The notes under the pieces are model-generated. The model ran no database searches, was not told the origin of the DNA, and was given only the letters and a program-made list of their open reading frames with translations. Shown piece by piece: positions 26,475 through 41,770 of a stretch of 64,000 nt of DNA. A program made the position numbers and the translations under genes. The stretch lies in the sequence record OR844650.1; one strand, written 5' to 3'. Each line of letters begins with the position of its first letter. The first letter of the stretch is position 1.

Positions 26475-26711
26475 TGTTTTGATTCCTTTGATTTGGAAGG
26501 AGAACCGTTTCCCCCTCTCGATGTAAAACATTATACGCTAATCTCTTAATCGTGCAAGTACTTTTTATTACTTTTTGCAAAATACTTTAAACGCTCTCAA
26601 TCGCATTCTAACGACCTTAACGCCACCAGCTAGGGCGATGCATCAGATAATCAGTTTAATGCGTTAGAATCGATTCTAGGCGGTGCTGGTGGCCTGGTAA
26701 ACGATAAACAC

Positions 26712-26737
26712 AAAAAAGCCCACTTATGCAGTGGGCT
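26712..26737 (-). terminator. Intrinsic terminator
   Basis: AGCCCAC-TGCATAA-GTGGGCT then T run on minus strand. Confidence 0.75.
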
Positions 26738-26758
26738 AGTGATTCAGTACTTTAATTG

Positions 26759-27241
26759 TTATGCTTCAACTTTGCGATGAGATTCGATCCATTCCTCGCG
26801 AGTCATACCGCTGGCGTTAATCGCGTCCAGTACTACCGCAATACAGTTACCACGCACCGGAATCAGATATTCTTCCCCGTTGTCCAGTACTACCGCTACG
26901 CGTTCCTGAATCCATTTTTTGGCTTTTACTTCTGGCTTGTCTTCCCCATACTTAACCGCCAGGGCTTTTTGTGCCATCTCTGTAACTACTTCCAGATCCA
27001 ATCCAACTACTGCCGCCTGAATACTTTCGATTGTTGCTTGTAGTTCTGCTTCACGGGCCGCCTTTGCCGCTTCAATTTCTGCCGCTTTATTTGCTTGTAG
27101 TTCTTTCGCAGTACTGTACGCGATGTTAAAATTATTGCGTACCGCTTTCATGGTATCGTTATCCAGTTCAGCCAGGATCTCAGCCGCGACGTTAGTTTCA
27201 TTTGCTACCAGTGCTTTGATGAATGATTTTACATTAGCCAT
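26759..27241 (-). CDS. Coiled-coil early protein
   Basis: Start MANVK; Ala/Glu/Lys-rich helix. Confidence 0.8.
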   Translation of the reverse strand: MANVKSFIKALVANETNVAAEILAELDNDTMKAVRNNFNIAYSTAKELQANKAAEIEAAKAAREAELQATIESIQAAVVGLDLEVVTEMAQKALAVKYGEDKPEVKAKKWIQERVAVVLDNGEEYLIPVRGNCIAVVLDAINASGMTREEWIESHRKVEA

Positions 27242-27446
27242 TTTATAAATCCTCAATTAAAGTTTAGTTTACGTTTATTAGTGTATCAAAGTTTTCTCGA
27301 CGTGTCCAGTTTTTCGTTCGACTTACTGGCGGTCTACTTAGTGCTCCCCGTCTTGATGTAATACATTCTACGCTTTTCTGCGGTAATGTCAACTACTTTT
27401 TTAAAACTATTTTCAAAGTATCTCAGTACTACGATACTACAAAAAC

Positions 27447-27469
27447 AAAAAAAGCCCACCAGGTGGGCT
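27447..27469 (-). terminator. Intrinsic terminator
   Basis: AGCCCAC-CTG-GTGGGCT then long T run on minus strand. Confidence 0.75.
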
Positions 27470-27475
27470 ATGTAC

Positions 27476-27706
27476 TTAATCAGTGAGTAAAATATTAAAC
27501 ACTTTACCATTTAACGTTATTGGTGCACTGCTACCAGGCTCAAGATCCGTTAGTATACCTGCAATCGCTTTATCATTGGCGACCTTTCCAGTGTCCAACA
27601 GTACGACAGTACTGATAAGATTAACGCTCGTTTCAATATCATAATGCACGGCGTTAAGTAGTTGTGTAGTACTGCTTTCGTTAAGTAAAACAATTCGCTT
27701 AGTCAT
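27476..27706 (-). CDS. Early hypothetical protein
   Basis: 76 aa. Confidence 0.7.
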   Translation of the reverse strand: MTKRIVLLNESSTTQLLNAVHYDIETSVNLISTVVLLDTGKVANDKAIAGILTDLEPGSSAPITLNGKVFNILLTD

Positions 27707-27727
27707 GATGTTACCCCGTAGTATCTA

Positions 27728-28027
27728 TCAACGGCAATTAATAACGCCAGTATGAGTTACTTTCTCAGTATCCATAACAGTGACCGAACCGCGTTTAGTA
27801 CTTGCATCGTAATAAATTGTCGTGCTACCTTTTTCGTCTTCTTCATGGAACGGCCCGTTTTTAAATGCTTCCGGCTGGATCTCTAAATCCTTTAATACAA
27901 TCTCGCCAGTTCTTTCATCGGTCATTGCAACAGTGCACTGAATGAATTTTTCACTACTTACATCTAATGACGCATTAACAGCGAAAGAGGAAACAGATAA
28001 AGCCAGGGCGATGATTGCAATTTTCAT
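27728..28027 (-). CDS. Exported early protein with signal peptide
   Basis: MKIAIIALALSVSSFAVNA signal-peptide pattern. Confidence 0.75.
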   Translation of the reverse strand: MKIAIIALALSVSSFAVNASLDVSSEKFIQCTVAMTDERTGEIVLKDLEIQPEAFKNGPFHEEDEKGSTTIYYDASTKRGSVTVMDTEKVTHTGVINCR

Positions 28028-28111
28028 TTGATTATCCTTAGTTACCAGGGGGAACCGCTCCCCCTTGCGATGTAAAATATTATACAGTACTAAAAACTAT
28101 TATCAAGTACT

Positions 28112-28348
28112 TTATGATTTTTTATAAAACATTTCAGCAGTGATATTTTTACCCGTTGGCTGTACTTTATCCAGAATTTTTTGATGCCCTGGCCGTCCAA
28201 ATGAATATGATCCGTAAACCGTAAACCAGTAGTTACCCTCAGTGTTTACATGTACAGCACAATAGGGAACGCCCCGCGATTCATCACTAGTAAAGTGTGC
28301 TACCGTTCCCGTTACATTCGAAGACGTTGATTTGATTTGTTCGACCAT
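28112..28348 (-). CDS. Early hypothetical protein
   Basis: 78 aa behind cassette. Confidence 0.7.
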   Translation of the reverse strand: MVEQIKSTSSNVTGTVAHFTSDESRGVPYCAVHVNTEGNYWFTVYGSYSFGRPGHQKILDKVQPTGKNITAEMFYKKS

Positions 28349-28491
28349 TTTCTTATTCCTTAGTTACCAGGGGAACCGCTCCCCCTATGCAAAACATTAT
28401 ACGCGTTTAAAAACTAATTGCAAGTATTTTAATAAAAAGTATTTGAAAAATAGTTGTTGACAAGTGCATCCAGTACTGGCATAATTACTAC

Positions 28492-28600
28492 ATCAAGACG
28501 AAACAGTCACTAACCCACCGGGTGCCGAGATCCGTCTATTAAATGATTCAGTACTGAAAAAGTAACGGGGAGTTATTATCTCCCCGCGTTGTTATTTTGT
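28492..28600 (+). ncRNA. Putative plus-strand small RNA, CCCANNGGGTGC family copy G
   Basis: TTGACA-17-CATAAT at 28457-28485, motif 28513-28525, CGGGGAG/CTCCCCG hairpin 28566-28586; no ORF. Confidence 0.5.
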
Positions 28601-28813
28601 AAGGTATAAACAGAAGTCACCTTTATTTGCTACGCCGCCAGTGTAACGCGATGAATAGTTAGAAACGTCCTGGACTTCTGCTATTACCAGGGTATCATCA
28701 TTCAATTCGTCGCAGAAGCAAACGGCTGGATCTTGTACGCCGATTTTGTCGGCATGTTCCCGCATAGATTTAACCAGTGCTTCCAGTTGGGAAAGAGTAG
28801 TGATATTAGCCAT
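28592..28813 (-). CDS. Early hypothetical protein
   Basis: Start MANITT after GAGGA. Confidence 0.7.
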   Translation of the reverse strand: MANITTLSQLEALVKSMREHADKIGVQDPAVCFCDELNDDTLVIAEVQDVSNYSSRYTGGVANKGDFCLYLTK

Positions 28814-28900
28814 TTTATTTTCCTCATTACCAGGGAGAACCATTTCCCCCCTCTATGTAAACCATTATACAGTACTGAAAACTAATTGCAAGTACTTTTT

Positions 28901-29104
28901 TTAATTTAATTGCTTTAAAACATAATCAAAGACACCACGCACATCATTGATCATTGCCGTGCGGTTAGCAGGTAACGCATCAGGATCGCCACTATCCCAG
29001 GCATTGATAAAACTCCCCAAATCATGAAAGATTTTATTCTGTAAGCCGATTAACTGCAATTCTTTTTCTTCAAGCTCTTTGATACGTTCAATTAAATCAC
29101 TCAT
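28901..29104 (-). CDS. Early hypothetical protein
   Basis: Start MSDLIE after AAGGA. Confidence 0.7.
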   Translation of the reverse strand: MSDLIERIKELEEKELQLIGLQNKIFHDLGSFINAWDSGDPDALPANRTAMINDVRGVFDYVLKQLN

Positions 29105-29121
29105 TATATAATCCTTAGTAC

Positions 29122-29403
29122 TTAACTGTAAGATCCGCAACGGTCGCAGTAGTGCCCCTCGTCATCGTCAACGAATTGACCAACGAAATTATCTACTTTC
29201 GCTTTCAGGTTATTATAATCGTTTTCTACTTCCTTTAAACGCTTCTGGTAGTATTCCAGTGCTTTAAGATATGCCGCGTCAGCAGTTTTCTCCTGCATAG
29301 CTAAATTCATGCCACGCGTTTCATCGTACAGCCAAAAACCATCGGTGCACTGGCTAATAGATAATGACTTGCTTAGTACTGTATAGTTAATTACTTTACT
29401 CAT
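29122..29403 (-). CDS. Early hypothetical protein
   Basis: Start MSKVIN after GAGGG. Confidence 0.75.
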   Translation of the reverse strand: MSKVINYTVLSKSLSISQCTDGFWLYDETRGMNLAMQEKTADAAYLKALEYYQKRLKEVENDYNNLKAKVDNFVGQFVDDDEGHYCDRCGSYS

Positions 29404-29461
29404 TAGATAAACCCTCAATAAAGGCGGGAACCATTCCCCGCCATTGTTACAGTACTGAATA

Positions 29462-29701
29462 TTACATTCCAACCATTGCAGCACGGATCGCCGTAGTGCT
29501 ATACTTGAATCCGTCCGGCGTTGTAGTAGTACCGTTGGCTTTTAATCTGCGGTACATACATTCCGCAGCAATATCTTTAGTTCTACTTTGTGCGATGCAA
29601 CTTTGAGCAAGCCGATACAATGACTCACCGTTATTAATCCATAAGGAAACATTCCAATGAGTTTTGTTTTTGTGCCCGTTGTAAGTTTTAGTACTAGCCA
29701 T
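29462..29701 (-). CDS. Early protein, paralogue of 31501-31740
   Basis: GHKNKTHWNVSLWINN and identical TPDGFKYSTTAIRAAMVGM end. Confidence 0.8.
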   Translation of the reverse strand: MASTKTYNGHKNKTHWNVSLWINNGESLYRLAQSCIAQSRTKDIAAECMYRRLKANGTTTTPDGFKYSTTAIRAAMVGM

Positions 29702-29793
29702 TTTTTTTAATCCTCGTTTGAGCGGGGAACCACTCCCCGCCTCGATATAAAGTATTATACGCCTTTAAACTTAGTTTGCAAGTACTTTTTAAA

Positions 29794-30405
29794 TTAATAT
29801 TCGATTGATTCTACTACACCATCAATGACATTGAATTGATATTCGTTACCCTCAATCAGTGCCGTAATGTTTTCAGTAGTGAATTGATCCTCATATGCAT
29901 TCTCTAAATCACGGTACAACTTGCGGGACAATTCACGAATAGTGTCAGTGAGTAGTTCCTCAAGCTCATTAACTAACGTTTCTTGTTTTGCGGTTAAATC
30001 AGTGTAAGCCGATTCAATGTACCCGCTTACAGTGTTCTCATGCGAGTAGTGGGAGTGAGAACGCTTTACACTCATCGCCAAATCATCTTCATTCAGCAAG
30101 TGACGGATTGAGCGATACTTAGTTAATGCTCTTACCTTGCGTAAAAACTTCACTGCGTCAACGTGGTCAGTACTGATTGATGCACCGTCACCCTGGGACC
30201 AAAAACCACTGAATTGTATTTCAGCGTCATTAATGCCATATTCCGGTAGTACTGTTTCTTTATAGTATTCAATTTCACTTTCAGAAAAATAATCATCGTT
30301 TAAGTTTTTTTCACGTTCCCGAACCAGTTCGATAGCTGACGTTTTTTGTTCTGCGTTCAATTCAGAAAAATCCATAACGAAAGTAGTAGTAGTGATAGTT
30401 TTCAT
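29794..30405 (-). CDS. Acidic conserved phage early protein (FSGFWSQGDGAS motif)
   Basis: 203 aa, Glu/Asp-rich; motif recalled from a widespread phage family. Confidence 0.8.
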   Translation of the reverse strand: MKTITTTTFVMDFSELNAEQKTSAIELVREREKNLNDDYFSESEIEYYKETVLPEYGINDAEIQFSGFWSQGDGASISTDHVDAVKFLRKVRALTKYRSIRHLLNEDDLAMSVKRSHSHYSHENTVSGYIESAYTDLTAKQETLVNELEELLTDTIRELSRKLYRDLENAYEDQFTTENITALIEGNEYQFNVIDGVVESIEY

Positions 30406-30469
30406 TTTGTAACTCTCATTCAGTAGTTGATGTAAGTATTATACGCTTTTAAAAACATTTGTCAAACTA

Positions 30470-30550
30470 TTTTATCAGGGGAGTTTTTCGTGTGCCTTAC
30501 TCCTGGGCTACTTAACGGGGAGTTACTTATTTCGTTCCCCGTCCTGATGT
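30470..30550 (-). ncRNA. Putative two-hairpin small RNA or long leader, copy 2
   Basis: Near-identical to 20240-20317; ACGGGGA/TCCCCGT stem. Confidence 0.4.
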
Positions 30551-30664
30551 AAAACATTATACGCCTTTAAACATAGTTTGCAAGTACTTTTTAAAAATAG
30601 TTTTCAGTACTGAATATTAAAAAAAAGTATTGACAGCATTATCAAGTACTGGCATAATATACCC

Positions 30665-30767
30665 CATGACAACAGCTAACCCACCGGGTGCACAATTGTA
30701 ACTGTAATAAACTACTTTTTCTATAGATACACTCCCGCACCCTATGGGCTACGGCTTATCTGCCAAT
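30665..30767. ncRNA. Convergent pair of motif-bearing transcripts (copy H plus, copy E minus)
   Basis: Plus promoter 30630-30658 with motif 30679-30691; minus promoter 30774-30802 with motif 30737-30749. Confidence 0.45.
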
Positions 30768-30832
30768 GAATACATTATGCCAGTACTGACAAAATAAGTC
30801 AATACCGGCAATTGTAAAGATTTGTAAACTGC

Positions 30833-31063
30833 TTATACTGCAATCGCGTCCAGGCTATAATAATAATAAGTGCCGTATTGGTGTACTTTATTACCTTTTA
30901 TTTCAGTACTGAATGAATCCGAACGGTTTGCATATGATGTTAATTTAAAGTACTTTGATTTGCTGATACGTTGCCATACACCGCAGATCCGCTGTAAGTA
31001 AGTAGTTTTATTCGTGGTAGTATCTTTTACGGTTTTAACTTCAGTCATATACATATTAGTCAT
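30833..31063 (-). CDS. Early hypothetical protein
   Basis: 76 aa behind cassette. Confidence 0.7.
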   Translation of the reverse strand: MTNMYMTEVKTVKDTTTNKTTYLQRICGVWQRISKSKYFKLTSYANRSDSFSTEIKGNKVHQYGTYYYYSLDAIAV

Positions 31064-31150
31064 TTTTATTACTCCAGGTTATAGGCGGGATGTGTTCCCG
31101 CTCTAGATGTAAAACATTATACGCCATTAAACATAGTTTGCAAGTACTTT

Positions 31151-31417
31151 TTATTCAAGTACTGCAATCTTTTTAGTACGGTACACGGTCACGCGGTTGC
31201 CCTTTCGGTCGAGCTTTATTTCTACCACTCGACGCGATACACTATCGGGACTTTTTAAGGCCGCTAACCAGTACTGTAATGATCTGGCTGTACTACGCTT
31301 TACAATGGCCCAACGTTCACCACTTGCCGATCCCGCACCCATATCTTTAAACGTTGCCCCGTCCTGGCGAGCGGCGATCCGAGCTTGTTCACGCGTCGCA
31401 AAATACTTAATATTCAT
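31151..31417 (-). CDS. Early protein, paralogue of 18726-19130
   Basis: Start MNIKY. Confidence 0.75.
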   Translation of the reverse strand: MNIKYFATREQARIAARQDGATFKDMGAGSASGERWAIVKRSTARSLQYWLAALKSPDSVSRRVVEIKLDRKGNRVTVYRTKKIAVLE

Positions 31418-31500
31418 GCTGTTGCCCTTATCGTTGGTGTATGAATAAAACACTATTATAAAGTACTATCACCGTGCAATAGTACTTTAAATAAATTCTA

Positions 31501-31740
31501 TTACATTCCAACCATCGCCGCACGGATCGCAGTAGTGCTATATTTGAATCCGTCCGGTGTTTTATCTTGTCCAGTCTGTTCTAAAAATAGCATCATATGA
31601 CGGGCCGCATCATTGCGATTAGTGCTATCGTTAATAAAGTCCTGGGCCAACCGGTACAATGATTCATCGTTATTAATCCAAAGGCTTACATTCCAATGAG
31701 TTTTGTTTTTGTGACCTAAGAACATTTTTGATTTTGCCAT
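31501..31740 (-). CDS. Early protein, paralogue of 29462-29701
   Basis: Start MAKSK after GAGGA. Confidence 0.8.
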   Translation of the reverse strand: MAKSKMFLGHKNKTHWNVSLWINNDESLYRLAQDFINDSTNRNDAARHMMLFLEQTGQDKTPDGFKYSTTAIRAAMVGM

Positions 31741-31823
31741 TTTTTTTAATCCTCTTATATAGTGGGGAACTATTCCCCACCTGATGTAAAACATTATACG
31801 CTTTTAAACTTAGTTTGCAAGTA

Positions 31824-32057
31824 CTATTTTTTCAGTACTGGTAAACCTTTGATCTCACCTGGCTGTACTTCCTCAAAGGCGACCGCCATCATACGGCTAT
31901 CATCTTCCTTACATTCTTCCATCGCATCACAAAAATGATTAATAACGTCCGGTGCAACGTCAACCACATCAAACAAGCCAACCTCAGTGCAACGGCTTAA
32001 AGCGTTTAATAGGTCAGTCAGTGCAACGGATTGAGAAACAGTTAAAATAGTACTCAT
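31824..32057 (-). CDS. Early hypothetical protein
   Basis: 77 aa behind cassette. Confidence 0.7.
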   Translation of the reverse strand: MSTILTVSQSVALTDLLNALSRCTEVGLFDVVDVAPDVINHFCDAMEECKEDDSRMMAVAFEEVQPGEIKGLPVLKK

Positions 32058-32151
32058 AAAATTAATCTCTTAATTTTAGTGGGGAACTATTCCCCACCTG
32101 ATGTAAAACATTATACGCCATTAAACATAGTTTGCAAGTACTTTATTAAAC

Positions 32152-32514
32152 TTATTTGTAAATTTTGCCACTGTCAGCCCATACCAGGAAACGAGGCATA
32201 TTATCCCATGCATCTTGTTTTAAGTTTAAGCCGTGCAATTCCTCAGTTGTTGCCATCCCTGGTACTGGCTTACTACACACCGCGAAATTTTCGCCCATGT
32301 ACTGATAAACCATCGTCAAATCATTTGAGATCATTACATGGATCATTGAATCAAGCATCAAAGTAGCGGCGTATTGTTCACGCTTAAGCGGCAACATTGC
32401 AATAAGTTCCCGATAAGCTGCAATGTGAATTTTTACAGTTTCAGCCGGAAGACCTTTCATCTCTTCGCGGAAGTTTACCAGGTTAAGCATGATTTTAGTG
32501 ATTTGAGTCGCCAT
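32152..32514 (-). CDS. Early hypothetical protein
   Basis: Start MATQI behind cassette. Confidence 0.75.
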   Translation of the reverse strand: MATQITKIMLNLVNFREEMKGLPAETVKIHIAAYRELIAMLPLKREQYAATLMLDSMIHVMISNDLTMVYQYMGENFAVCSKPVPGMATTEELHGLNLKQDAWDNMPRFLVWADSGKIYK

Positions 32515-32907
32515 CGTTTTAATCTCTCTTAATGTGTAGCGGGAAGTGTTCCCGCTCTCGATGTAAAACATTATACGCCTTTAAACATAGTTTGCAAGTA
32601 CTTTCTACATGTACTTTTAAAATAGTTTTCTTTCTATATAGGGGAACTATCATTCAGTACTGCAACCATCCAGGGGAACTATCTTTCTATATAGGAGTAC
32701 TATTATTCAGTACTGAATCAACCAAATCACTACTACACCCCGTAAAACGGCCTCAGACGCATTCTAACGCATTAATACACCTAAGCTATACATTTGCACC
32801 ATTCCAATCATTCCAGGGCTTTACGGGCCGTTTAAACGCGTTAAATTATTTTCAATTATTTTGTTTTTAGGTATTGACTTGATCCTGAAAAAGCGTATAA
32901 TTACTAC

Positions 32908-33200
32908 ATAGACGCGAGAAAGCGGAAACCCCAGAGGGTGCGGAATTACGCCCAAAATTCAAGATATAAAAAAAGGATACACTCCCGCACCCTAGCAGGT
33001 AAACGCACTTTCTCAGTACTGAAATATAGTACCATAGTACGGCCCAGGATAGCAAGCAAATTAATTAAAACTTTTTTGCTTCCAGGGTATTGCTTTATTT
33101 TTTCAGTACTGTATAATAGTTCCATCAAGTCGAGAAAGACTCAAGCCCACCGGGTGCATAGTTACGCCCAAAATTCAGTACTGAAAAAATTTTTAAAAAA
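32908..33200 (+). ncRNA. Two tandem plus-strand motif-bearing transcripts (copies I, J) with opposing degenerate copy F
   Basis: Promoters 32874-32901 and 33090-33117; motifs 32929-32941 and 33145-33157, each followed by TTACGCCCAAAATTC. Confidence 0.4.
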
Positions 33201-33340
33201 TATCCGTCCAGGCCGTTGACATTGCCCCCAGTTTATAAGATAATGATTCCAGATTCAGAAAAATCTAACTTCAGATACTGCGGGGAAACTATCCCCACGC
33301 GGTAGGGGAACTATTGGAAAAACAAAATAAAATTTTGATT

Positions 33341-33452
33341 TAGCCGTCTATACTTCCAGACGTGTAACCATCTAGCCGTTTAGCCGTCCAAACGTCTAGC
33401 CATCCAGCCATCCAGAAATCTAGCCGTTTAGCCGTCTAGATGGATAGCCATC
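33341..33452 (+). repeat. 8-bp periodic array, consensus TAGCCRTC
   Basis: Units in register at 33341, 33373, 33381, 33397, 33405, 33421, 33429, 33445. Confidence 0.8.
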
Positions 33453-33650
33453 TTTACTTCCAGACTTCTGGAGGGCTAGACATATCTACGTCCAAAATCC
33501 ATCCAGGGTAACTACACCCAAAATCCGTCAGTACTATACCATAGATCTATCTTTTGAAAGGGAGTATTCAGTACTGCCATCATAGCCCTCACTATGTTAC
33601 CCTAGGAGGATGAAGACCATCATGTAGTACTGAATACTGTTAGAGGGAAT

Positions 33651-33670
33651 CCACCAGCACAAGCTGGTGG
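33651..33670. other. Inverted pair of Chi octamers
   Basis: CCACCAGC-ACAA-GCTGGTGG. Confidence 0.8.
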
Positions 33671-34549
33671 CATAATGCTTTAGATTAAAATCAGTACTGA
33701 CACCATTCTGTTAATATCAGTACTGTTATTACGATTTTCATATGAGGTTCAAAAAGATGTACCACCACAGGAGGAACTATCTTTTCTGTACTGTCTCACG
33801 ACAGGAGGTAGAGTAAATGAATTGTTCGCAGCAACTCATCACCCTATGTAGAACATTATACAGTACTGAATCATAAAGTCAATAACTTTCTTTCATCTTT
33901 CAGTACTGATATTCTTGAGAACTACCCGACTACAAACATCATTATATCCCACAAATCATAAACGTCCCAACGTAAATTTCAACTTTCGAAGATCCAACTT
34001 TTATTTCATAGGTACTCCAAAATTTTTAGGATCGAGATTTAGGATGGAGTACTAACCAACTTTTTGCTGGAGCCTCAAGGGGTAATGGAATTTTACCCCG
34101 AAGGGTAAAGGGGTAATTGAAATTAAGGTGAAAGTAATAATTCAGTACTAATCATTGCGTGATTACTTTTGATTACATTTGATGTAATTTGCAAAATGGA
34201 AAAGGAGCTTGGAAACTACAAAGTACGGCAGACTTCCTCTGCCTACTTAGTGGCATATCGACACCTTCAGTACTGAATACTTTTAGGGCAGTACTGAATC
34301 CTTCCCTAGCATTCTTGAGTAATCTTGTCTATAATAATCAGTACTGAATCATATATAATCATTCTGTGATTCTACGGTGCTCATATAAATGTTTATATAT
34401 GATTACTTATGACTACATATGATTACGGGGTTTAGCCTGGGGAGAATCCTAGTGATCGCATTTGTCCAGGCTGAATTTTAACAATTCTTCTAATTGTTAA
34501 AGCCTGTCCAATGCTTTCCCTGCGGAGCTTCCCCTGTCTATATGTTGAA

Positions 34550-34756
34550 TTACTTCCTATATATAAGCATTAACATATAGTAGTACTGATTATGCTGTAC
34601 ATTCTCTTTAATATTATAAGGGTCTATAGCAATCTCGGTACATCTGTTAAATGCATATCTATTAAATGCCAGTACTATTATAGATCTAATCCATGCTTGG
34701 TCAGTCGGTGGTAGTTTACTTATATAGTACTCTTTATAGTTTTTTATGTTCTGCAT
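34550..34756 (-). CDS. KEYY-family small protein
   Basis: KEYYISKL...MLIYRK. Confidence 0.7.
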   Translation of the reverse strand: MQNIKNYKEYYISKLPPTDQAWIRSIIVLAFNRYAFNRCTEIAIDPYNIKENVQHNQYYYMLMLIYRK

Positions 34757-34767
34757 AGTATACCTTA

Positions 34768-34959
34768 TTATTTCAAAGTACCATATAGTACTCTTAATAG
34801 GAAGTAGTACGTATTAGAGATATCATTAGTAGTTAAAACAATCTTTGTACACATATTAAATTCGTATTGAGTCATTGCCAGGGGGATTAAATTGTTAACC
34901 CATGCTTGTTCGTTTTCTTTTAGTTTACTTATATAGAAATCTTTATGTTCTTTATTCAT
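34768..34959 (-). CDS. KEYY-family small protein
   Basis: KDFYISKL. Confidence 0.7.
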   Translation of the reverse strand: MNKEHKDFYISKLKENEQAWVNNLIPLAMTQYEFNMCTKIVLTTNDISNTYYFLLRVLYGTLK

Positions 34960-35161
34960 ATAGGAATAGTATACCTATGATGCCGGAGTACATATTAGTA
35001 CTGTTATTATTGTCGTTTGCGTTTAAAGTCATTTGAATACAATTATTGTAGCATACTCTGCCGAAATATGTATCAGTACTTAAAGGTGCTGTAGTCCTTA
35101 GAAACATTTGTTCTGTGGGGCTGAGGTGTTTGGAGTAGAATTCTTTATGTTCTTTATTCAT
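34952..35161 (-). CDS. KEYY-family small protein
   Basis: Close paralogue of 35535-35741. Confidence 0.75.
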   Translation of the reverse strand: MNKEHKEFYSKHLSPTEQMFLRTTAPLSTDTYFGRVCYNNCIQMTLNANDNNNSTNMYSGIIGILFLYE

Positions 35162-35166
35162 ATTAG

Positions 35167-35352
35167 TTAGTGTCTGTATATAAGTAATAGTAAGAATACG
35201 TACTGCACCTGTTCATCTTTAGTATTGAGTACTGTACGTATTGCGTCATGGAACAAGAATATAGTACTTGGGTCATTAGAATTTAAGGGGTTTACGGGGA
35301 CGGCGTGTTTGTAGTTCCCTTTAACAAATTGTATATAGTATTCTCTATGCAT
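35167..35352 (-). CDS. KEYY-family small protein
   Basis: LLLIYRH. Confidence 0.7.
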   Translation of the reverse strand: MHREYYIQFVKGNYKHAVPVNPLNSNDPSTIFLFHDAIRTVLNTKDEQVQYVFLLLLIYRH

Positions 35353-35353
35353 A

Positions 35354-35542
35354 TCAGTACCTATATATTAGGGCGAGAATGTAGTACAGTTTATATGTAT
35401 TATAATCTGGGTTGATAGCACATAGTGTGTGGTAGTGGAATTGTTTGGTATTTTTCTTATCCTTGATATCTATTGGGTTTAGTGGTATAAGCATTTGGGA
35501 GTTTAGTTCCAGATGGTTTAAGTAGAATTCTTTGTTATTCAT
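35354..35542 (-). CDS. KEYY-family small protein
   Basis: ALIYRY. Confidence 0.7.
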   Translation of the reverse strand: MNNKEFYLNHLELNSQMLIPLNPIDIKDKKNTKQFHYHTLCAINPDYNTYKLYYILALIYRY

Positions 35543-35741
35543 AGAAGAATATTAGTCCCATTACGCCTGAGTACTGAATATTTTTGTTATTGTTTTCTAA
35601 AGCTTCTAGAGTAATACGTATACAATTATTAAAGCAATCTCTGGCGTGTGGTGTATCTAAACGTAAAGGTGATACACTCCTTAGAAACATTTGTTCTGAT
35701 GCACTGAGGTGTTTGGTGTAAAATTCTTTCTGTTCGTTCAT
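35535..35741 (-). CDS. KEYY-family small protein
   Basis: KEFYTKHLS. Confidence 0.75.
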   Translation of the reverse strand: MNEQKEFYTKHLSASEQMFLRSVSPLRLDTPHARDCFNNCIRITLEALENNNKNIQYSGVMGLIFFYE

Positions 35742-35751
35742 ATTGGCCTCT

Positions 35752-35940
35752 TTAGTACACGAAAGCTAGGTACAGTGTATGATACAGTACTCGATGATAG
35801 CTATCAAAATCTAGTATACATGCTTTAGTGCACATAGTAAAGTACACTTTATCGTTTTGAGCATTGATACCGCGAGGTTTATCTAATAGATTAGTACTGA
35901 GGTACATTGGGAAATATTTTGTGTAGTATTCTTTATGCAT
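35752..35940 (-). CDS. KEYY-family small protein
   Basis: Start MHKEYY. Confidence 0.7.
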   Translation of the reverse strand: MHKEYYTKYFPMYLSTNLLDKPRGINAQNDKVYFTMCTKACILDFDSYHRVLYHTLYLAFVY

Positions 35941-35941
35941 A

Positions 35942-36124
35942 TTAGTACCTGAATATAAGTAGGATAGTGTTATATAATTGGTCATAGCTACTACTATTTT
36001 CTATACTGCGTTCTATGCAATTATTGAATCCCAGTACTGCCAAATCGTTATCCAGGGGGACTTTATATCTGGCGTAGTGTTCAAATATACTGGGGAGAAA
36101 TTGTGTGTAGTATTCTTTGTGCAT
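35942..36124 (-). CDS. KEYY-family small protein
   Basis: MHKEYY...LIFRY. Confidence 0.7.
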   Translation of the reverse strand: MHKEYYTQFLPSIFEHYARYKVPLDNDLAVLGFNNCIERSIENSSSYDQLYNTILLIFRY

Positions 36125-36125
36125 A

Positions 36126-36317
36126 TTAGTACCTATATATTAGTAAAAGGATGTGATACAGTACTCGATTATAGTCTTCAATATATATCGAGGATTTAGT
36201 GCACTGAATGAAGTAGTCTTTTTCGTAGTTTTTTTCTATACCCAATGGTTCTGTTGGTAGAAGGTGTTGGAGATACATTGGGAGTTTCTCTATGTAGTAT
36301 TCTTTGTGGTTATTCAT
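36126..36317 (-). CDS. KEYY-family small protein
   Basis: KEYY...LLIYRY. Confidence 0.7.
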   Translation of the reverse strand: MNNHKEYYIEKLPMYLQHLLPTEPLGIEKNYEKDYFIQCTKSSIYIEDYNRVLYHILLLIYRY

Positions 36318-36325
36318 ATTATGTG

Positions 36326-36505
36326 TTATTTCGTGAAAACAAGGGTTAGTACTGCATAGTACAAGTCATACGTATCTTTAGGGTTAATAGCACCTTTAAT
36401 ACATTCTTTCATTACTTCATTATAGATAATTTTAGTACTGAATGTATTGGATGTTACTATATCGGAATTAAGGTACGAGAGGTAGAATTCTTTATAAGTA
36501 TTCAT
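36326..36505 (-). CDS. KEYY-family small protein (59 aa, MNTYKEFY...)
   Basis: Hand translation. Confidence 0.65.
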   Translation of the reverse strand: MNTYKEFYLSYLNSDIVTSNTFSTKIIYNEVMKECIKGAINPKDTYDLYYAVLTLVFTK

Positions 36506-36506
36506 A

Positions 36507-36689
36507 TTAGTACCTGAATGTTAGCATTACTACGTAGTACAGCATATATGGATTATCATCGTATATGAGCGTGTACTTAGTACATTGTTGGAACATTATC
36601 TTTGCGTGATCTTTGATACCCAATGCAACGTTTGGTATATGGTGTTGTAGATGCATTGGGATTTTATCTTTGTAGTATTCTTTATACAT
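36507..36689 (-). CDS. KEYY-family small protein
   Basis: Start MYKEYY. Confidence 0.7.
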   Translation of the reverse strand: MYKEYYKDKIPMHLQHHIPNVALGIKDHAKIMFQQCTKYTLIYDDNPYMLYYVVMLTFRY

Positions 36690-37341
36690 AGTTTGAAATA
36701 TACGTAATGAGGTGATGAAATTTCTTATCAGTACTGATAAGTTCCTGTACATGTTTTGTTAGTTTGTACGCGTTTTTATAGAGTCCTGGATTATCGATTA
36801 CAGTACTGTACATGAATTCTTCTTCCTCGGATAATTCTTTGTGTTCTAGTTCTTTGAGGAATTGCAGTACTGTATCAGTTTCGTTAGTACGTTGCTTTTG
36901 GAAGAAGTGCATGTTATTGTGTATTTTTTCTGAACCCATGCAGTACATATCGCCGATTTGGAATTGTGCAGTACTGATATCATGGGTGCTATTACAATTC
37001 CCGAAGAAGTATACATTCCCGAAAGATAGAATTATAGTGCACGGGATATTATCCATGTGTATATAGATAGATGCATTCTTTAGTGCTTTTGTGCTGGTAT
37101 TAGTACTCAATACTTTTAAATCAGTATTATAGATATTAATAAAAGCAAGAGCTATATTATTTTTCTTCAAGTACGATTTGAGGTTCTTAGATACGAGAAC
37201 ATTTCTGGATTTTTTCTTTTTATTTCGTTTCTTTAGTACACACGGGTCGTAAGTATATGCTGGTGTAAAAGATTCTGCTTGAATACTGTTGAGGTATTTA
37301 AAGTGCTTAAGGTATTGTTTGCTGTGTGCATTAAGTTTCAT
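36682..37341 (-). CDS. Basic hypothetical protein with FQxSLV-like motif
   Basis: 219 aa, EEEEFMYSTVID. Confidence 0.75.
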   Translation of the reverse strand: MKLNAHSKQYLKHFKYLNSIQAESFTPAYTYDPCVLKKRNKKKKSRNVLVSKNLKSYLKKNNIALAFINIYNTDLKVLSTNTSTKALKNASIYIHMDNIPCTIILSFGNVYFFGNCNSTHDISTAQFQIGDMYCMGSEKIHNNMHFFQKQRTNETDTVLQFLKELEHKELSEEEEFMYSTVIDNPGLYKNAYKLTKHVQELISTDKKFHHLITYISNYV

Positions 37342-37351
37342 TTGGTTTCCT

Positions 37352-37531
37352 TTATACAGATGCGAGAGCGAGGATTTCCCTGAAGGGATTATCTTTTGTT
37401 AGTGCGTGATGAATGCAGCTATTGAGATTAATATTTTTAGTACTATTAGTTGCCAGGTTGTAGTACTTCACGAAGGTGTCGTACATGAAACGGTCTTTAA
37501 TGCTTATGTGTTCTATATAGTATTCTTGCAT
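37352..37531 (-). CDS. KEYY-family small protein (59 aa, MQEYYIE...)
   Basis: Hand translation; AAGGAA RBS. Confidence 0.65.
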   Translation of the reverse strand: MQEYYIEHISIKDRFMYDTFVKYYNLATNSTKNINLNSCIHHALTKDNPFREILALASV

Positions 37532-37539
37532 ATTATTCC

Positions 37540-37728
37540 TTACATAGAGATGAGTTTCAGTACATCAATATACATATAACGTTCAGATGACAGTACACGG
37601 GTAGTGATAATCTCAATCGATATATTTTTAATTCCATGTGCAGATGATTGATGGTGCTGAATAAATGAGTTGTGCATACTTTGTTCTATGTGGTTTAGTT
37701 TATTGAAGTAGTACTCAAAAGTGTTCAT
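37540..37728 (-). CDS. KEYY-family small protein
   Basis: MNTFEYY...VLKLISM. Confidence 0.7.
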   Translation of the reverse strand: MNTFEYYFNKLNHIEQSMHNSFIQHHQSSAHGIKNISIEIITTRVLSSERYMYIDVLKLISM

Positions 37729-37735
37729 GTCTACC

Positions 37736-37915
37736 TTAGATTGAGATTAGTTTAAGTACTTCTCTGTACGTGTACTTTTCGTTTTGTGCTTCTACTGTAC
37801 ACGAGAGTAGATAACGTTTTTTATCTCTTTTGTTCCCGACTGTGTAGTACCTTTGGAATTTATTATAGTTGTATCTATCTTTGTGCTGGAGGTTATAGAT
37901 ATAGAATTCTTGCAT
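37736..37915 (-). CDS. KEYY-family small protein (59 aa, MQEFYIY...)
   Basis: Hand translation; C-terminal AQNEKYTYREVLKLISI identical to 38118-38300. Confidence 0.7.
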   Translation of the reverse strand: MQEFYIYNLQHKDRYNYNKFQRYYTVGNKRDKKRYLLSCTVEAQNEKYTYREVLKLISI

Positions 37916-37923
37916 AGAGTACC

Positions 37924-38109
37924 TTAGATTGCTATCAGTTTGAGTACTTCAATATATGTGCGGTACTCTGCTTTAATTAAATTTGTACACACTGTAAGGG
38001 AATTTCTTTGTATAAGTTTATTGCCGCTTTTATACGCATTTCTCCACACATAGAGATGAGATCTTTCAGGCATAGATAGTTTATTTGTATAGTACTCAAA
38101 TGTATTCAT
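37924..38109 (-). CDS. KEYY-family small protein
   Basis: MNTFEYY...VLKLIAI. Confidence 0.7.
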   Translation of the reverse strand: MNTFEYYTNKLSMPERSHLYVWRNAYKSGNKLIQRNSLTVCTNLIKAEYRTYIEVLKLIAI

Positions 38110-38117
38110 ATATTACC

Positions 38118-38300
38118 TCAAATAGAGATTAGTTTAAGTACTTCTCTGTATGTGTACTTTTCGTTTTGTGCATCTCTTGTGCTTGTATATAGGTATCCTC
38201 GACGATATTTGTTGCTCCCGTTCTTGTAGTTGAATTCGAACTTATTGTAGATGAATCTATCGCCAGGCTGTAATTTACTTAAGTACAATTCAATGCTCAT
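38118..38300 (-). CDS. KEYY-family small protein
   Basis: Start MSIELY. Confidence 0.7.
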   Translation of the reverse strand: MSIELYLSKLQPGDRFIYNKFEFNYKNGSNKYRRGYLYTSTRDAQNEKYTYREVLKLISI

Positions 38301-38310
38301 AGTATTCTCT

Positions 38311-38496
38311 TTACATATCAATAAGTTTCAGTACTGCTCTGTACGTGTACTTAGTTGTTAGTACTTCTGTTATAGCAGCACTGAAGTAATGATGTTTGTC
38401 TCTTATACTGCCGCGTTTGTAGTACCACACATGGGAGTTGTGGGTGTACTTGTCCCTGTCGGATAGTTGTTGGTAGTAGTAGCTTATGTGATTCAT
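38311..38496 (-). CDS. KEYY-family small protein
   Basis: KYTYRAVLKLIDM. Confidence 0.7.
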   Translation of the reverse strand: MNHISYYYQQLSDRDKYTHNSHVWYYKRGSIRDKHHYFSAAITEVLTTKYTYRAVLKLIDM

Positions 38497-38697
38497 GGTA
38501 GTGTAATTAGCCTTACTATATTAAAGTACTCGGTCCCTGGTACACCTTGTAGAATATTATCAACTACATTTTCTTGGTGCAGGATTAATACATTCGGTGC
38601 GGTTCTTTTAAGGTTTTTTTAAAGTACTGTATTCTTGTTTAAGGATGAACTGTACATCTTTAGGGAGAATATCTAAGTAGTACTGGTGTATGTTCAT
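38493..38697 (-). pseudogene. KEYY-family gene with +1 frameshift in an A7 run
   Basis: Removing one A at 38614-38620 restores a 67 aa ORF ending YFNIVRLITLP with ATGA coupling to the next gene. Confidence 0.6.
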
Positions 38698-38717
38698 AGT
38701 TTTCATATAGTACTCTT

Positions 38718-38903
38718 TTAGAACTTAAAGATGAGGTTCATGATAGATAAGTACTTAGTTTCAGGAAATTGATGTTCTATTGCATAACGTGTCTCCAGTC
38801 TGAAGTCAAATTTATAAAAGGGACTATTCATATCCATAGGTTCATTGGGAAATGAATCTCTGTATTGTTTGTGCAGCTTACTACAGTAGAATTCTTTATA
38901 CAT
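38718..38903 (-). CDS. KEYY-family small protein
   Basis: MYKEFY...LIFKF. Confidence 0.7.
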   Translation of the reverse strand: MYKEFYCSKLHKQYRDSFPNEPMDMNSPFYKFDFRLETRYAIEHQFPETKYLSIMNLIFKF

Positions 38904-38904
38904 A

Positions 38905-39117
38905 TTAGTGCTCGATTAAAAGGGTTAGGATGTAATAGTATTGCATACTTTCTACCCCTTGTACAGCATTTCTTATTTTATTATTCCTGTACGAGTTCAA
39001 GAGTTTAGGACAATGTTTGAAGTTTATATAATTATTTTGTGTATACAGTAGGCTTTCTCGTAGACCTTTTGTTGGTAGTGCATCAATGTAGTACTGTTCA
39101 ATGTTCATAGTGTTCAT
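38905..39117 (-). CDS. KEYY-family small protein
   Basis: EQYYIDAL...ILTLLIEH. Confidence 0.7.
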   Translation of the reverse strand: MNTMNIEQYYIDALPTKGLRESLLYTQNNYINFKHCPKLLNSYRNNKIRNAVQGVESMQYYYILTLLIEH

Positions 39118-39341
39118 AGAGCTACCAGTACTAAGATTTTTGATAATTGTTTGTTTCTATCCCCGCAGATGTTGTTGTGTAAAATGCTCACTACAAGGGT
39201 ATCAAGTGCATTGTTCAGCATAAGGTTACATCCAGTACTGTTATGTGTTTTTAGCTCAATTAGCCACGAACAATCCGCGAGAAATTTCCCGTACTCTAGT
39301 TCATTTAGCGTATTAATGTAGTACTTAAGTGCATTTGTCAT
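39114..39341 (-). CDS. KEYY-family-like small protein, first in array
   Basis: AAGGAG RBS; downstream of promoter 39367-39395. Confidence 0.7.
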   Translation of the reverse strand: MTNALKYYINTLNELEYGKFLADCSWLIELKTHNSTGCNLMLNNALDTLVVSILHNNICGDRNKQLSKILVLVAL

Positions 39342-39443: not shown

Positions 39444-40592
39444 ATGTTACCTTTTGTTAGAATGTTTGATTATGGGAATGAAGCACCTACCAACTCTGGG
39501 CGTTTTAAAATATATTCCAGTGATTCTATGTATCTTCATGATACTTATACTGACAAGTTGTATGCATCTTCTGCGACGAATTGGGGTACTGGTACAGGTG
39601 TAGCATCGAGTAAATTTATTCTTTGTGCGGAGAATGTTAAACGAGTTCTATTGGAAGATAACAGTAGTGATTGTCAATTGTATGAAGAGAAAGGTACTGG
39701 AAAAGTTTTTATCACTGGTAACACGAAGGCATTCACTGGTGTAACTGATAGAAAAACTTTGTGGACGGACTGTACTACGTGGATAACATCAAGTGGTATT
39801 AATGTTTCTGATATAAAATACATGAGTAGTTTTTATGATATGAAGGTGAATTTGATAACAAACGATGGTACATTGTATTGTTGTGGAGCTAACAATATAT
39901 CGAACATATCATCATTTGGTGATGGCACAAACATTAATTCTTTTAACACATTCAAAAGAGTAGATACTATAACTTCGGTTAAAAAGGCAGTTGGTAACAT
40001 TTATTTGCGAGAAGATAATACTTTATGGGGTTGTGGTTTTAACTATTACTACCAGTTGGGCACGGGTAATCAAACTTCTATTACTGGGGTGACGATGATT
40101 TCTTCGGATGTTATAGATTTTAATGTAAGTTATCAGAGTACATTTTTTATCAAATCGGATAATAATTTGTACGCTTGTGGTAAACAGTTCGGTGCACAAT
40201 ATGGGAACGAATTTGGTACAGGTGGTACTTCCTCTTCTACTGATATACAATATAAAACTCCCACATTATTGAGTGCAGGTGTTTATAGTTTATATACTTG
40301 TGTTGGTAACATGGCATCACATATAGTTAAAGGTGATGAAGTACTTTATGCATCTGGAAGCAACTCGTCTGGTCAATTAGGTGTTGGTAATAATAATAAT
40401 CAGTACTCCTATACTCCTTCATATACTTCGTTTAATACCTCTTGTAATTTGGTACGCACCCCATCTGGTTCACTTATACTTACTGATACTGGAAAATTAT
40501 ATTATTGTGGCCTTGCAATAGTAGTAATGGGTGGTATTTCTGGACAGAACGTTCTTAATTATACAGAAGTCGATATGTCATTTTTGCAGTAA
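39444..40592 (+). CDS. MLPF-leader RCC1/BLIP-II-like beta-propeller protein 1
   Basis: GxNxxGQLG-type repeats (CGFNYYYQLGTG, SGSNSSGQLGVG); 382 aa. Confidence 0.85.
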   Translation: MLPFVRMFDYGNEAPTNSGRFKIYSSDSMYLHDTYTDKLYASSATNWGTGTGVASSKFILCAENVKRVLLEDNSSDCQLYEEKGTGKVFITGNTKAFTGVTDRKTLWTDCTTWITSSGINVSDIKYMSSFYDMKVNLITNDGTLYCCGANNISNISSFGDGTNINSFNTFKRVDTITSVKKAVGNIYLREDNTLWGCGFNYYYQLGTGNQTSITGVTMISSDVIDFNVSYQSTFFIKSDNNLYACGKQFGAQYGNEFGTGGTSSSTDIQYKTPTLLSAGVYSLYTCVGNMASHIVKGDEVLYASGSNSSGQLGVGNNNNQYSYTPSYTSFNTSCNLVRTPSGSLILTDTGKLYYCGLAIVVMGGISGQNVLNYTEVDMSFLQ

Positions 40593-40600
40593 ATTAATAT

Positions 40601-40660
40601 GCCAGTACTTGATACTGGCTTTTTTTGATTAAATATAGTATAATGAATAAAGGAGGAAAT
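40601..40660 (+). promoter_or_regulatory. Terminator + TAAATA promoter + RBS cassette
   Basis: GCCAGTA-CTTGA-TACTGGC-T7, TTAAATATAGTATAATGAATAAAGGAGG. Confidence 0.85.
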
Positions 40661-41770
40661 ATGTTACCTTTTGTAAGAATGGTTAAGTACGGGAATATTG
40701 CACCAGTACCGAAAAAAATAAAGAAAGTTATAGCAGGATATGATAATTTATATGTACTATATGGTGATGGTTCGCTATATGGTTGTGGAATCAATAACTA
40801 TCAACAGTTAAATATTGATGGAACTGCTACACAAAATAATTGGGTACTAATTACCAATGGTGTTAGTAATGCATGGGCTGGTGGATACAATATTTTATAT
40901 TTGAAAGAAGATAAATTTATAATGCACGGAACTAATGTCTCATTAGGTTTAGGAAATACTACAATTCCATTAGGTGGAGTAGATGTAACTTCTTCATTCC
41001 CAGATATCTCTAATATTAAAATGATATCCATTGGTTTTGATTCAATGCACTATGTTAGTGCTGATGGTACAACTGTATATGGAAGAGGTATGAACACAAA
41101 TGGTTCTGTTGGTTCAGGTAGTACTTACTCACAGAGTACTTTCACTTCAGTACTGAATAATGGAACTAATCAGGTTATTGATATATTTGGTAACGTTAAT
41201 AATACAGTGCTTCTAACATCGAATGGTGAGCTTCGAGCATGTGGGACAAGTGCTTATGGTTCTATAGGAAATGAAACTGGTAAGTGGACATCGTTTGGTT
41301 TAAAATTATCTGGCACTAAAATAATGGGTGGTAATGGGTATAGTACGCTTGCATATACAAATTCGGGAATGTACCACTCAGGGTGGCAGTTAAATGGGGA
41401 ACTAGGAAATGGTTTAGATACTAACGTACAGGTATATCCATTTCAATTTAACTCTAAAACGATAGATAGCAAGATAGATAAAATTGCCAAATCATCATCT
41501 GGGTCATATGTTAACATGTACTCAACAACAGAAGGAAAGATATATACGACAGGTTCGTTTGGTAAAAACGGGTCAACTACTGCATTGAATTTGTTCACCA
41601 ATACATTAACACTTATAAATTACAATCCAGATACCGCCTCGTTGTATACGTGCACAAACTTCAGTGTTGTGTATGATGGTAATGAAACTATTGCTGTAAG
41701 TGGTAGTCCTACATATGTACCAGGGGGCGTTGCCGCTAATAGATGGACTACAATTCCATTACCCAAGTAA
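40661..41770 (+). CDS. MLPF-leader RCC1-like protein 2
   Basis: 369 aa; close paralogue of 54854-55963. Confidence 0.85.
   Translation: MLPFVRMVKYGNIAPVPKKIKKVIAGYDNLYVLYGDGSLYGCGINNYQQLNIDGTATQNNWVLITNGVSNAWAGGYNILYLKEDKFIMHGTNVSLGLGNTTIPLGGVDVTSSFPDISNIKMISIGFDSMHYVSADGTTVYGRGMNTNGSVGSGSTYSQSTFTSVLNNGTNQVIDIFGNVNNTVLLTSNGELRACGTSAYGSIGNETGKWTSFGLKLSGTKIMGGNGYSTLAYTNSGMYHSGWQLNGELGNGLDTNVQVYPFQFNSKTIDSKIDKIAKSSSGSYVNMYSTTEGKIYTTGSFGKNGSTTALNLFTNTLTLINYNPDTASLYTCTNFSVVYDGNETIAVSGSPTYVPGGVAANRWTTIPLPK

Follow-up and report, generated by a model that had tools for sequence, protein, structure and literature searches.

The palindrome AGTACT occurs about eight times more often than expected in the genome of Escherichia phage ECO103 4-12-1 (OR844650, 351,992 bp), an Asteriusvirus of the 121Q/PBECO4-like jumbo myoviruses, and it is under selection at the DNA level everywhere in this genome. 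The DNA analysed, called the window below, is a stretch of 64,000 nucleotides that matches the final 64 kb of this record with 100% identity; positions are those of the window unless the record is named. Whole-genome counts were made on the complete record, rebuilt from the window and the remaining sequence. As a tentative explanation, we propose that AGTACT, with the optimum CAGTACTG and, weakly, TTCAGTACTGAA, may be the site of an abundant, sequence-specific, two-fold-symmetric and clade-specific DNA-binding factor, for which it would be both a self mark and an early-promoter operator. This putative factor would be restricted to the enterobacterial Rak2-like jumbo phages and is probably encoded by the phage.

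A hyperabundant palindromic octamer

There are 919 copies of AGTACT in the genome, for 119 expected, and it is the commonest hexamer in the window as well as in the whole genome. The window contains 268 copies, compared with 21.3±4.7 in dinucleotide shuffles, none of which (0 of 100) reached the observed number. The maximal-order Markov expectation (225) says little here, since the motif inflates the pentamer counts as well. A preliminary description of this DNA, made from its letters, had drawn attention to a non-coding cluster of 12 copies within 816 bp (33530..34345), where about 0.3 were thought to be expected. The cluster indeed has exactly 12 copies for about 0.28 expected, and the frequent extension of the hexamer that had been noted there is found as TCAGTACT at eight sites, CAGTACTG at seven and TCAGTACTGA at four. 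The word had also been described as iterated across the whole window; this is not literally true, as positions 1-5671 and 8111-13103 have none.

Analysis of the flanking bases identifies the octamer CAGTACTG as the true unit. It is present in 204 copies in the genome for 3.5 expected (about 58-fold) and in this respect is of the highly iterated palindrome (HIP) type, for which a palindromic octamer has to exceed the number predicted from composition at least 10-fold across the genome. Longer forms are rarer and still in excess: TCAGTACTGA has 48 copies for 0.37 expected, and the weak extension TTCAGTACTGAA 16 copies for 0.04 expected. The core is AGTACT/CAGTACTG, not the tetramer GTAC that had been considered as an alternative. 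The effects of the flanks are multiplicative per half-site, about 7.6x for C at -1 or G at +1, about 2x for A/T and about 1x (no effect) for G at -1 or C at +1. They are also symmetric relative to gene orientation, with C at -1 in 285 sites and G at +1 in 326. Graded, multiplicative and dyad-symmetric preferences of this kind are what one would rather expect from differences in binding affinity than from the site of a strict enzyme. There is little information past ±1 and 93% of the contexts are unique, a pattern that does not correspond to a dispersed repeat or a miniature inverted-repeat transposable element.

Selection at the DNA level

The preliminary description had named one result that would speak against it, namely codon-corrected counts without enrichment outside repeats. 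The counts are enriched. In the coding DNA of the window there are 165 copies of AGTACT, and about 53 remain after synonymous-codon shuffling; the excess is seen in all five sub-regions and in all three frames. For the coding DNA of the whole genome, the corresponding numbers are 674 and 191.7±12.1 (shuffling within genes). When sites with at least 67% identity of their ±15-bp contexts were merged, 215 of the 268 window sites and 851 of the 919 genome sites remained as separate contexts. Even in the paralogue arrays at 34.5-39.1 kb, the positions and frames of AGTACT differ between copies.

The choice of codons is affected accordingly. Ser-Thr pairs are written AGT-ACT in 345 of 663 cases (52%; 106, or 16%, expected), permissive Val-Leu pairs are written GTA-CTN in 207 of 334 (59 expected), and the minor tyrosine codon TAC is chosen in 122 of the 152 contexts that permit it (80%; 46 expected). 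The dipeptides Ser-Thr and Val-Leu are 1.4-fold over-represented, which is not the case for Thr-Ser and Leu-Val. Through these shifts in codons and dipeptides, the DNA word has marked the proteins.

The sites are also conserved between genomes. In comparison with the Asteriusvirus TH47 (89% identity over 31.7 kb), AGTACT is kept at 83 of 104 coding sites (80%) and at 78 of 81 non-coding sites (96%), whereas control hexamers are kept at proportions of 0.60 and 0.665, with equal values for composition-matched controls. In orthologous proteins of the phages RaK2, fHe-Yen9-03, GAP32 and CBB (44-66% amino-acid identity), 15-26% of the sites lie at the identical codon and frame, for no more than 0.14 coincidences expected. 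The other sites in these orthologues are lineage-specific, and the density is nonetheless maintained. Words differing from AGTACT by a single mismatch have observed/expected ratios of 0.51-1.98, most of them at least 1. None of them is strongly depleted, which argues against directional repair as the cause of the excess; the deamination products AGTATT/AATACT, with a ratio of 1.06, are not depleted either.

Position relative to the virion ends, promoters and terminators

Asteriusviruses have direct terminal repeats of about 21 kb; the ends of phage fEgEco12 were set by PhageTerm and confirmed with digests (PMC13070987). Position 1 of fEgEco12 maps to window position 34247 on the minus strand (98% identity), and the end of its repeat to about position 12973. 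The direct terminal repeat of ECO103 4-12-1 is about 21.3 kb long (12973..34247, minus strand; inner boundary approximate) and consists of small early genes with a GC content of 38-39% and 6-7 AGTACT per kb. Its boundary at 34240..34255 is the left physical end of the virion DNA (34247, read on the minus strand), and both GC content and AGTACT density shift there. In run X1, a public run of a close relative, contig depth is 23.8 up to about 34284 and 11.9-13.9 past that point, as expected of the two-fold step at a repeat boundary. The flagged cluster straddles the concatemer junction: nine of its sites lie within the terminal repeat, in the first 700 bp of virion DNA, and three just before the right-hand repeat copy. 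In the first 1.1 kb of virion DNA (33126..34247, minus strand), where no open reading frame (ORF) was called, the AGTACT cluster is followed by a Chi site and then by an iteron array. Phage CBB has the same elements in the same order where its repeat begins.

The density of AGTACT is 9.5 per kb in non-coding and 3.1 per kb in coding DNA. Along the virion chromosome it is U-shaped: the first 20 kb have 6.7 sites per kb and the last 33 kb have 5.7-6.6, compared with 1.4-1.9 at 120-260 kb; this gradient from the ends to the middle persists in coding DNA alone, and sites are clustered within 100-700 bp of the left end. Nothing stands out in the spacing of the sites, except for a distance of 20-24 bp found in promoters.

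The intergenic regions of the terminal repeat are cassettes composed of a promoter, a 5' hairpin and a ribosome-binding site. In the early sigma-70 promoters, AGTACT abuts or overlaps the -35 element (aaAGTACTTGCA, AGTACTaTTGACA), directly precedes the -10 element (AGTACT-N-TATAAT), or does both. The overlap with -35 boxes and promoter spacers reported in the preliminary description is thus confirmed, in aaAGTACTTGCA and AGTACTgTATAAT contexts. The promoter at 28844..28900 (minus strand) carries both sites, one abutting the -35 element (TTGCAA) and one as AGTACT-G-TATAAT; that at 22447..22529 (minus strand) reads AGTACT-a-TTGACA, followed by the spacer and a second AGTACT directly before the -10. 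The offsets from the -10 hexamer are -27 to -29 and -7, which places paired sites about two helical turns apart. Both offsets are found again in TH47 and in GAP32 and CBB, which are distant Mimasviruses, hence in two genera, and are absent from PA5oct and one Justusliebigvirus. A dyad-symmetric site at fixed positions overlapping the core elements of promoters is what is found at operators.

Downstream of almost all early promoters there are 'gttttacatc' and a GC-rich stem-loop of the GGGGAGAA-TAGT-TCTCCCC type, for example at 16200-16286 and 22743-22838. The stem-loop lacks a T-run and stands ahead of the ribosome-binding site, so that it corresponds to a hairpin of the 5' untranslated region rather than to a terminator.

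Terminators containing AGTACT are found in an array of fifteen tandem paralogues with RCC1-like repeats (39444..57211, plus strand; about 380 aa each), in which the coding sites are mostly AGT-ACT (Ser-Thr). Each paralogue is followed by a terminator with AGTACT in its stem and by a late-type promoter (TAAATATAGTATAAT). Within this array (39-57 kb), the word is in the stem of 11 of the 13 intergenic terminators, in the form GCCAGTACT..AGTACTGGC, so that the earlier statement that all late terminator stems contain it was slightly overstated. At 49025..49094 (plus strand) it is present in both arms of the stem. Between this array and the physical end there are packed small genes (34248..39341, minus strand) with paralogue families of 11 and six members, where 4.4 kb of coding DNA contains 34 AGTACT, compared with 9.2 after synonymous shuffling. 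The genes of these tandem families encode about 60 aa, occupy 34553-36317, 38721-39117 and 37355-38496, and are separated by 8-11 bp; the 11-member family is probably phrog_11711.

Only two long gaps without AGTACT are present in the genome (8.3 and 5.0 kb, for a mean spacing of 380 bp), both of them just inside the inner repeat boundary. The shorter (8111..13103, minus strand) abuts this boundary, is conserved in TH47 and sits within the tandem array of phrog_4148. This array consists of 24 paralogous genes of about 70 aa (6907-12905) with an LGTNYQE-like conserved motif; it is almost free of AGTACT and abuts the boundary as well. The longer gap (record 285378-293664), of which positions 1..5671 (minus strand) of the window are a part, contains genes of unknown function.

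Occurrence in other phages and in the host, and absence of GCGC

The distribution of the trait was surveyed in sampled genomes; the Asteriusviruses TH47 and BF17 are represented by samples and the host by one 50-kb sample of E. coli K-12. AGTACT is enriched 14-22-fold in TH47 and BF17, 15-16-fold in the Mimasviruses GAP32 and CBB, and about 7-fold in RaK2 (Alcyoneusvirus) and fHe-Yen9-03 (Eneladusvirus). Among the genomes sampled, enrichment is confined to these four enterobacterial Rak2-like genera. It is not seen in the non-enteric relatives PA5oct of Pseudomonas (4 copies versus 17 expected), Atu_ph07 of Agrobacterium (1 versus 6.7) and XacN1 of Xanthomonas (0 versus 4.7), or in the rV5-like coliphages, of which a Vequintavirus has 11 copies versus 13.8 and a Justusliebigvirus 0 versus 16.7. 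The sampled genomes without enrichment were searched for another hyperabundant palindrome, which might have co-varied with a reader, and none was found. The host sample has three AGTACT for 11.6 expected, or about 0.06 per kb, and the phage about 2.6 per kb. Being rare in the host sample, the word could serve as a self mark.

The tetramer GCGC shows the opposite behaviour. ECO103 4-12-1 has no copy in 352 kb, where 297 are expected, and none is present in the five other AGTACT-rich samples RaK2, GAP32, CBB, TH47 and fHe-Yen9-03. It is present in every AGTACT-poor genome (PA5oct, Atu_ph07, XacN1 and the rV5-like phages), and the 50-kb sample of E. coli K-12 has 342 copies (about 7 per kb). As GCGC is absent from phages of different host genera, a phage-intrinsic cause, for example a GCGC-directed nuclease, is hinted at as much as host restriction. 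Further words with no copy in the genome are CCATGG, AGGCCT and CAGCTC/GAGCTG.

The E. coli Chi sequence (GCTGGTGG) is over-represented 15-fold in the genome (28 copies for 1.9 expected). Eleven copies are in the terminal repeat, where, in virion orientation, nine face the right end (the nearest 1370 bp in) and two the left end (the nearest 578 bp in). In the window there is one Chi site at 33663-33670, which faces the end, and there are nine further ones in 14335-33650. The enrichment of Chi at the repeat suggests that attack on the ends matters to the phage.

Search for cognate enzymes and binding proteins

The preliminary description had recommended searching the full genome for a methylase or a nucleoid protein specific for the word. 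Motif scans of the genome revealed only two methyltransferases. One is a C5 enzyme of 286 aa, encoded outside the window (piece L002 of the record, 43771-44631, minus strand), which among solved structures most resembles the catalytic domains of DNMT3A/B/C, with M.HaeIII and M.HhaI less close, and whose target-recognition region is minimal. This is consistent with the CpG methylation of RaK2 DNA reported from bisulfite sequencing (PMC3622015); the C of AGTACT is not within a CpG. The other, a Dam-family adenine enzyme of 173 aa (PF05869), contains the sole amino-methyltransferase motif. No methylase or endonuclease of an AGTACT type was recognised in these scans. Restriction-modification targets are accompanied by a cognate enzyme or are avoided, whereas this site is enriched and no such enzyme was recognised. 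DNA of fEgEco12 is cut normally by ten enzymes, ScaI and RsaI not being among the ten (PMC13070987).

The search for a binding or nucleoid protein was equally negative: Pfam analysis of the 373 ORFs of 45-165 aa identified no helix-turn-helix, ribbon-helix-helix, AbrB or HU domain. One small ORF has a TnsA-like endonuclease N-terminal domain (endonuclease-like in Pfam) and another a T5orf172/MUG113 domain; judging from these domains, both are possible site-specific nucleases.

The host protein SlmA binds a 12-bp palindrome with G, T, purine, A and G at positions 1-5 (PMC3020112). Hijacking of SlmA was considered and rejected. There are no matches to GTRAGYRCTYAC in 352 kb, and the outer flanks are the opposite of what SlmA needs: at position 3 of the SlmA frame the genome prefers a pyrimidine (432 YAGTACTR versus 107 RAGTACTY), and GAGTACTC is not enriched.

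Possible functions of AGTACT

Dyad symmetry, symmetry relative to the direction of transcription, fixed positions in promoters and concentration at the ends together indicate recognition of double-stranded DNA by a symmetric dimer. The putative factor would coat the phage DNA, nucleating at the ends and thereby marking it as self, and the paired sites of early promoters would act as operators, most simply by shutting off early transcription. By analogy with the MetJ box, the size and symmetry of AGTACT would suit one ribbon-helix-helix dimer. The idea of a genome-wide self mark, already present in the preliminary description, is retained in the sense that AGTACT is a DNA-level signal under selection, rare in the host sample and shared by four genera; its methylase version is weakened, as far as can be judged from the encoded enzymes, no AGTACT-type enzyme having been recognised. 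A recombination system, likewise named there as a possible user of the word, is conceivable.

Several observations weigh against a binding factor. No candidate protein emerged from the Pfam analysis of the 373 small ORFs, and to occupy about 900 sites in each genome copy the protein would have to be very abundant. The two AGTACT-free stretches beside the repeat are not explained by such a factor. The fixed positions in promoters could result from the descent of promoter cassettes combined with a general pressure that keeps any AGTACT. If the enterobacterial genera form one clade, the trait may represent one evolutionary event and not independent support. In addition, most of these data would also be compatible with a host factor or with a modification enzyme.

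The second of these, in which AGTACT is modified by a methylase or base-modifying enzyme not recognised in the scans and the modified site is the functional mark, in a HIP1-like manner, seems rather unlikely to us. The hexamer has the format of a type II enzyme site. The sampled Justusliebigvirus coliphage avoids it completely, which suggests that 919 sites in one phage would call for some protection against enzymes of the ScaI/Eco255I type. Two orphan methyltransferases are indeed encoded, and HIP1 has been linked to orphan methylases (PMC4390886). However, the CpG preference suggested by the DNMT3-like enzyme and by RaK2 (PMC3622015) would leave the C of AGTACT untouched, and the second methyltransferase belongs to the Dam family. 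The graded flanks, the undepleted AGTATT/AATACT and the normal digestion of fEgEco12 DNA by the ten enzymes, none being ScaI or RsaI, also speak against modification. A host origin of the reader, in the form of a conserved Enterobacterales protein such as a nucleoid or division factor recruited or titrated by the phage, is quite improbable. It would agree with the confinement of the trait to relatives infecting Enterobacterales, which may equally reflect one ancestral event. We know of no host factor other than SlmA with this site. The SlmA consensus GTGAGTACTCAC is centred on AGTACT (PMC3020112), and cells infected by the Asteriusvirus Sharanji filament (PMC11895373), but SlmA itself is excluded by the missing GTRAGYRCTYAC matches and the pyrimidine-preferring flanks. 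A Chi-like signal independent of orientation, by which a helicase-nuclease coming in from the DNA ends would be attenuated and which, as a palindrome, would work at both ends of the repeat, is unlikely, if somewhat less so than a host protein. It is in line with the peak density in the terminal 20-33 kb at both ends, with the cluster 100-700 bp from the left end, and with the presence in the repeat of true Chi sites facing both ends. It leaves the promoter offsets unexplained; an asymmetric, orientation-biased word would be expected, and the palindrome with its graded, symmetric flanks suggests instead a dimer on double-stranded DNA. To our knowledge, no nuclease recognises AGTACT.

Biased mutation or repair, such as very-short-patch-like conversion, would make the excess a functionless by-product, and bias of this type explains the excess of CCWGG in E. 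coli. It has been proposed for HIP elements too (PMC4390886), and is here very improbable: no single-mismatch neighbour is strongly depleted, the sites are kept well above background, and different genera share the fixed places in promoters as well as the cluster at the end. There is little reason to believe that the word acts as AGUACU in RNA, where it would serve for processing or binding. Its density in early transcripts and its part in terminator stems would fit, but RNA would not evidently need a palindrome, the flanks are symmetric whatever the direction of the gene, promoter DNA ahead of the transcription starts contains the word to an equal degree, and no Rfam matches were found in 12-40 kb of the window. 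The least probable explanation, which we reject, regards the excess as an artefact that repeats, gene duplication or codon usage would have produced. Some copies are indeed inherited with promoter and terminator cassettes and within paralogue arrays; still, 851 of 919 contexts are unique, 674 coding copies are found against 192 in synonymous shuffles, and the sites of paralogues differ in position and frame.

A broader possibility, more doubtful than the binding factor proposed above, combines the two words. The enterobacterial Rak2-like jumbo phages might possess a self/non-self system that is written in sequence and free of modification, with (C)AGTACT(G) as the positive and GCGC as the negative mark. 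A phage factor reading (C)AGTACT(G) would then protect, organise or license phage DNA and gate early promoters, and GCGC would leave the host DNA alone open to a GCGC-directed activity.

Other features of the terminal repeat

The iteron array near the left physical end (33341-33439, about 800-900 bp from it) has a period of 8 bp and about 12 units resembling TAGCCGTC. A similar array is present at the matching relative place in CBB (sample positions 660-830), and the array is a candidate packaging or replication signal. Intergenic cassettes of 170-430 bp are repeated within the terminal repeat (about 14227-14472, 17054-17220, 20174-20487, 23731-23952, 30406-30832 and 32572-33100) and contain a conserved long hairpin, AGCCCACAGGGTGCGG ... 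CCGCACCCTGTGGGT, which is also found in CBB (sample positions 1000-1100). An Rfam scan of 12-40 kb of the window gave no significant match, the hairpin cassettes included.

The repeat encodes, all on the minus strand, a protein with a ParE-like toxin domain (18412-18663), a DksA/TraR-type zinc-finger protein (21467-21721) and an ORF with a weak protein-kinase-like match below the Pfam threshold (17224-17805). The neighbour of the ParE-like gene had no match in the protein atlas. The DUF7249 gene (31501-31794) has 83-90% nucleotide identity with genes of many rV5-like and Phapecoctavirus coliphages; this similarity points to a recent horizontal exchange. The part of the window around this gene is also matched by seven records labelled Campylobacter phage. 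One of that label, MG065689 (146 kb), has its matches where a coliphage has them and may be mislabelled.

Significance and comparison with known systems

The general view is that restriction pressure makes phages lose short palindromes, and this clade of the largest coliphages did the opposite. A ScaI-site palindrome is here strong enough to bend codon choice and the dipeptide content of proteins, while the same clade removed every GCGC; a reader with about 900 sites per genome is implied. Excess of AGTACT together with absence of GCGC is a simple sequence diagnostic for the clade. In practical terms, ScaI has roughly 900 sites in each of these genomes and HhaI has none. The motif also offers a handle on how a chromosome of 350 kb is marked, protected or organised, and how early genes are silenced, in jumbo phages that do not form a nucleus.

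No mention of AGTACT was found in the papers on Asteriusvirus, RaK2 and CBB that we checked, and literature on AGTACT in connection with phages or GAP32, or on over-represented palindromes, gave nothing relevant. ScaI and Eco255I recognise the same hexamer; restriction targets are normally avoided by phages, whereas AGTACT is enriched 8-fold here and no gene for a cognate enzyme was found. The SlmA site (GTGAGTACTCAC) has the identical central hexamer, but its required outer bases are missing, with 0 matches in 352 kb. Operators of the MetJ/Arc type resemble AGTACT in being short, perfectly dyad-symmetric 8-bp sites of one dimer, paired over the promoter core; they differ in being few per genome, compared with about 900 here, and no ribbon-helix-helix gene was recognised among the 373 small ORFs.

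Chi (GCTGGTGG) and the DNA uptake sequences and uptake signal sequences are likewise over-represented short words that identify 'own' DNA, and the uptake sequences also occur inside genes and as inverted pairs forming terminators. All of these are asymmetric, orientation-biased and read by RecBCD or a competence receptor, whereas AGTACT is palindromic. TF1 of SPO1 and p6 of phi29 are abundant phage proteins that bind along the phage genome, TF1 preferentially at the early promoters of the terminal repeat and p6 preferentially at the ends, and they repress early promoters. By analogy, they would be the closest functional counterparts of the putative factor. However, TF1 reads hydroxymethyluracil DNA and p6 reads bendability, not a word, and no HU-like or p6-like gene was recognised in ECO103 4-12-1.

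The nearest known phenomenon is HIP1 (GCGATCGC) of cyanobacteria, also a hyperabundant 8-bp palindrome that is present in coding as well as non-coding DNA, remains in excess once codon usage is corrected for and is conserved beyond the neutral level (PMC5861425, PMC4390886). AGTACT differs from it in being carried by a virus, in being AT-rich, in having no evident cognate methylase, in being built into promoters and terminators, in its rising density toward the genome ends and in its coupling to the total loss of GCGC. The function of HIP1 is still unsettled (PMC5861425, PMC4390886), and these phages provide a tractable system for the long-standing question of what such hyperabundant palindromes do.

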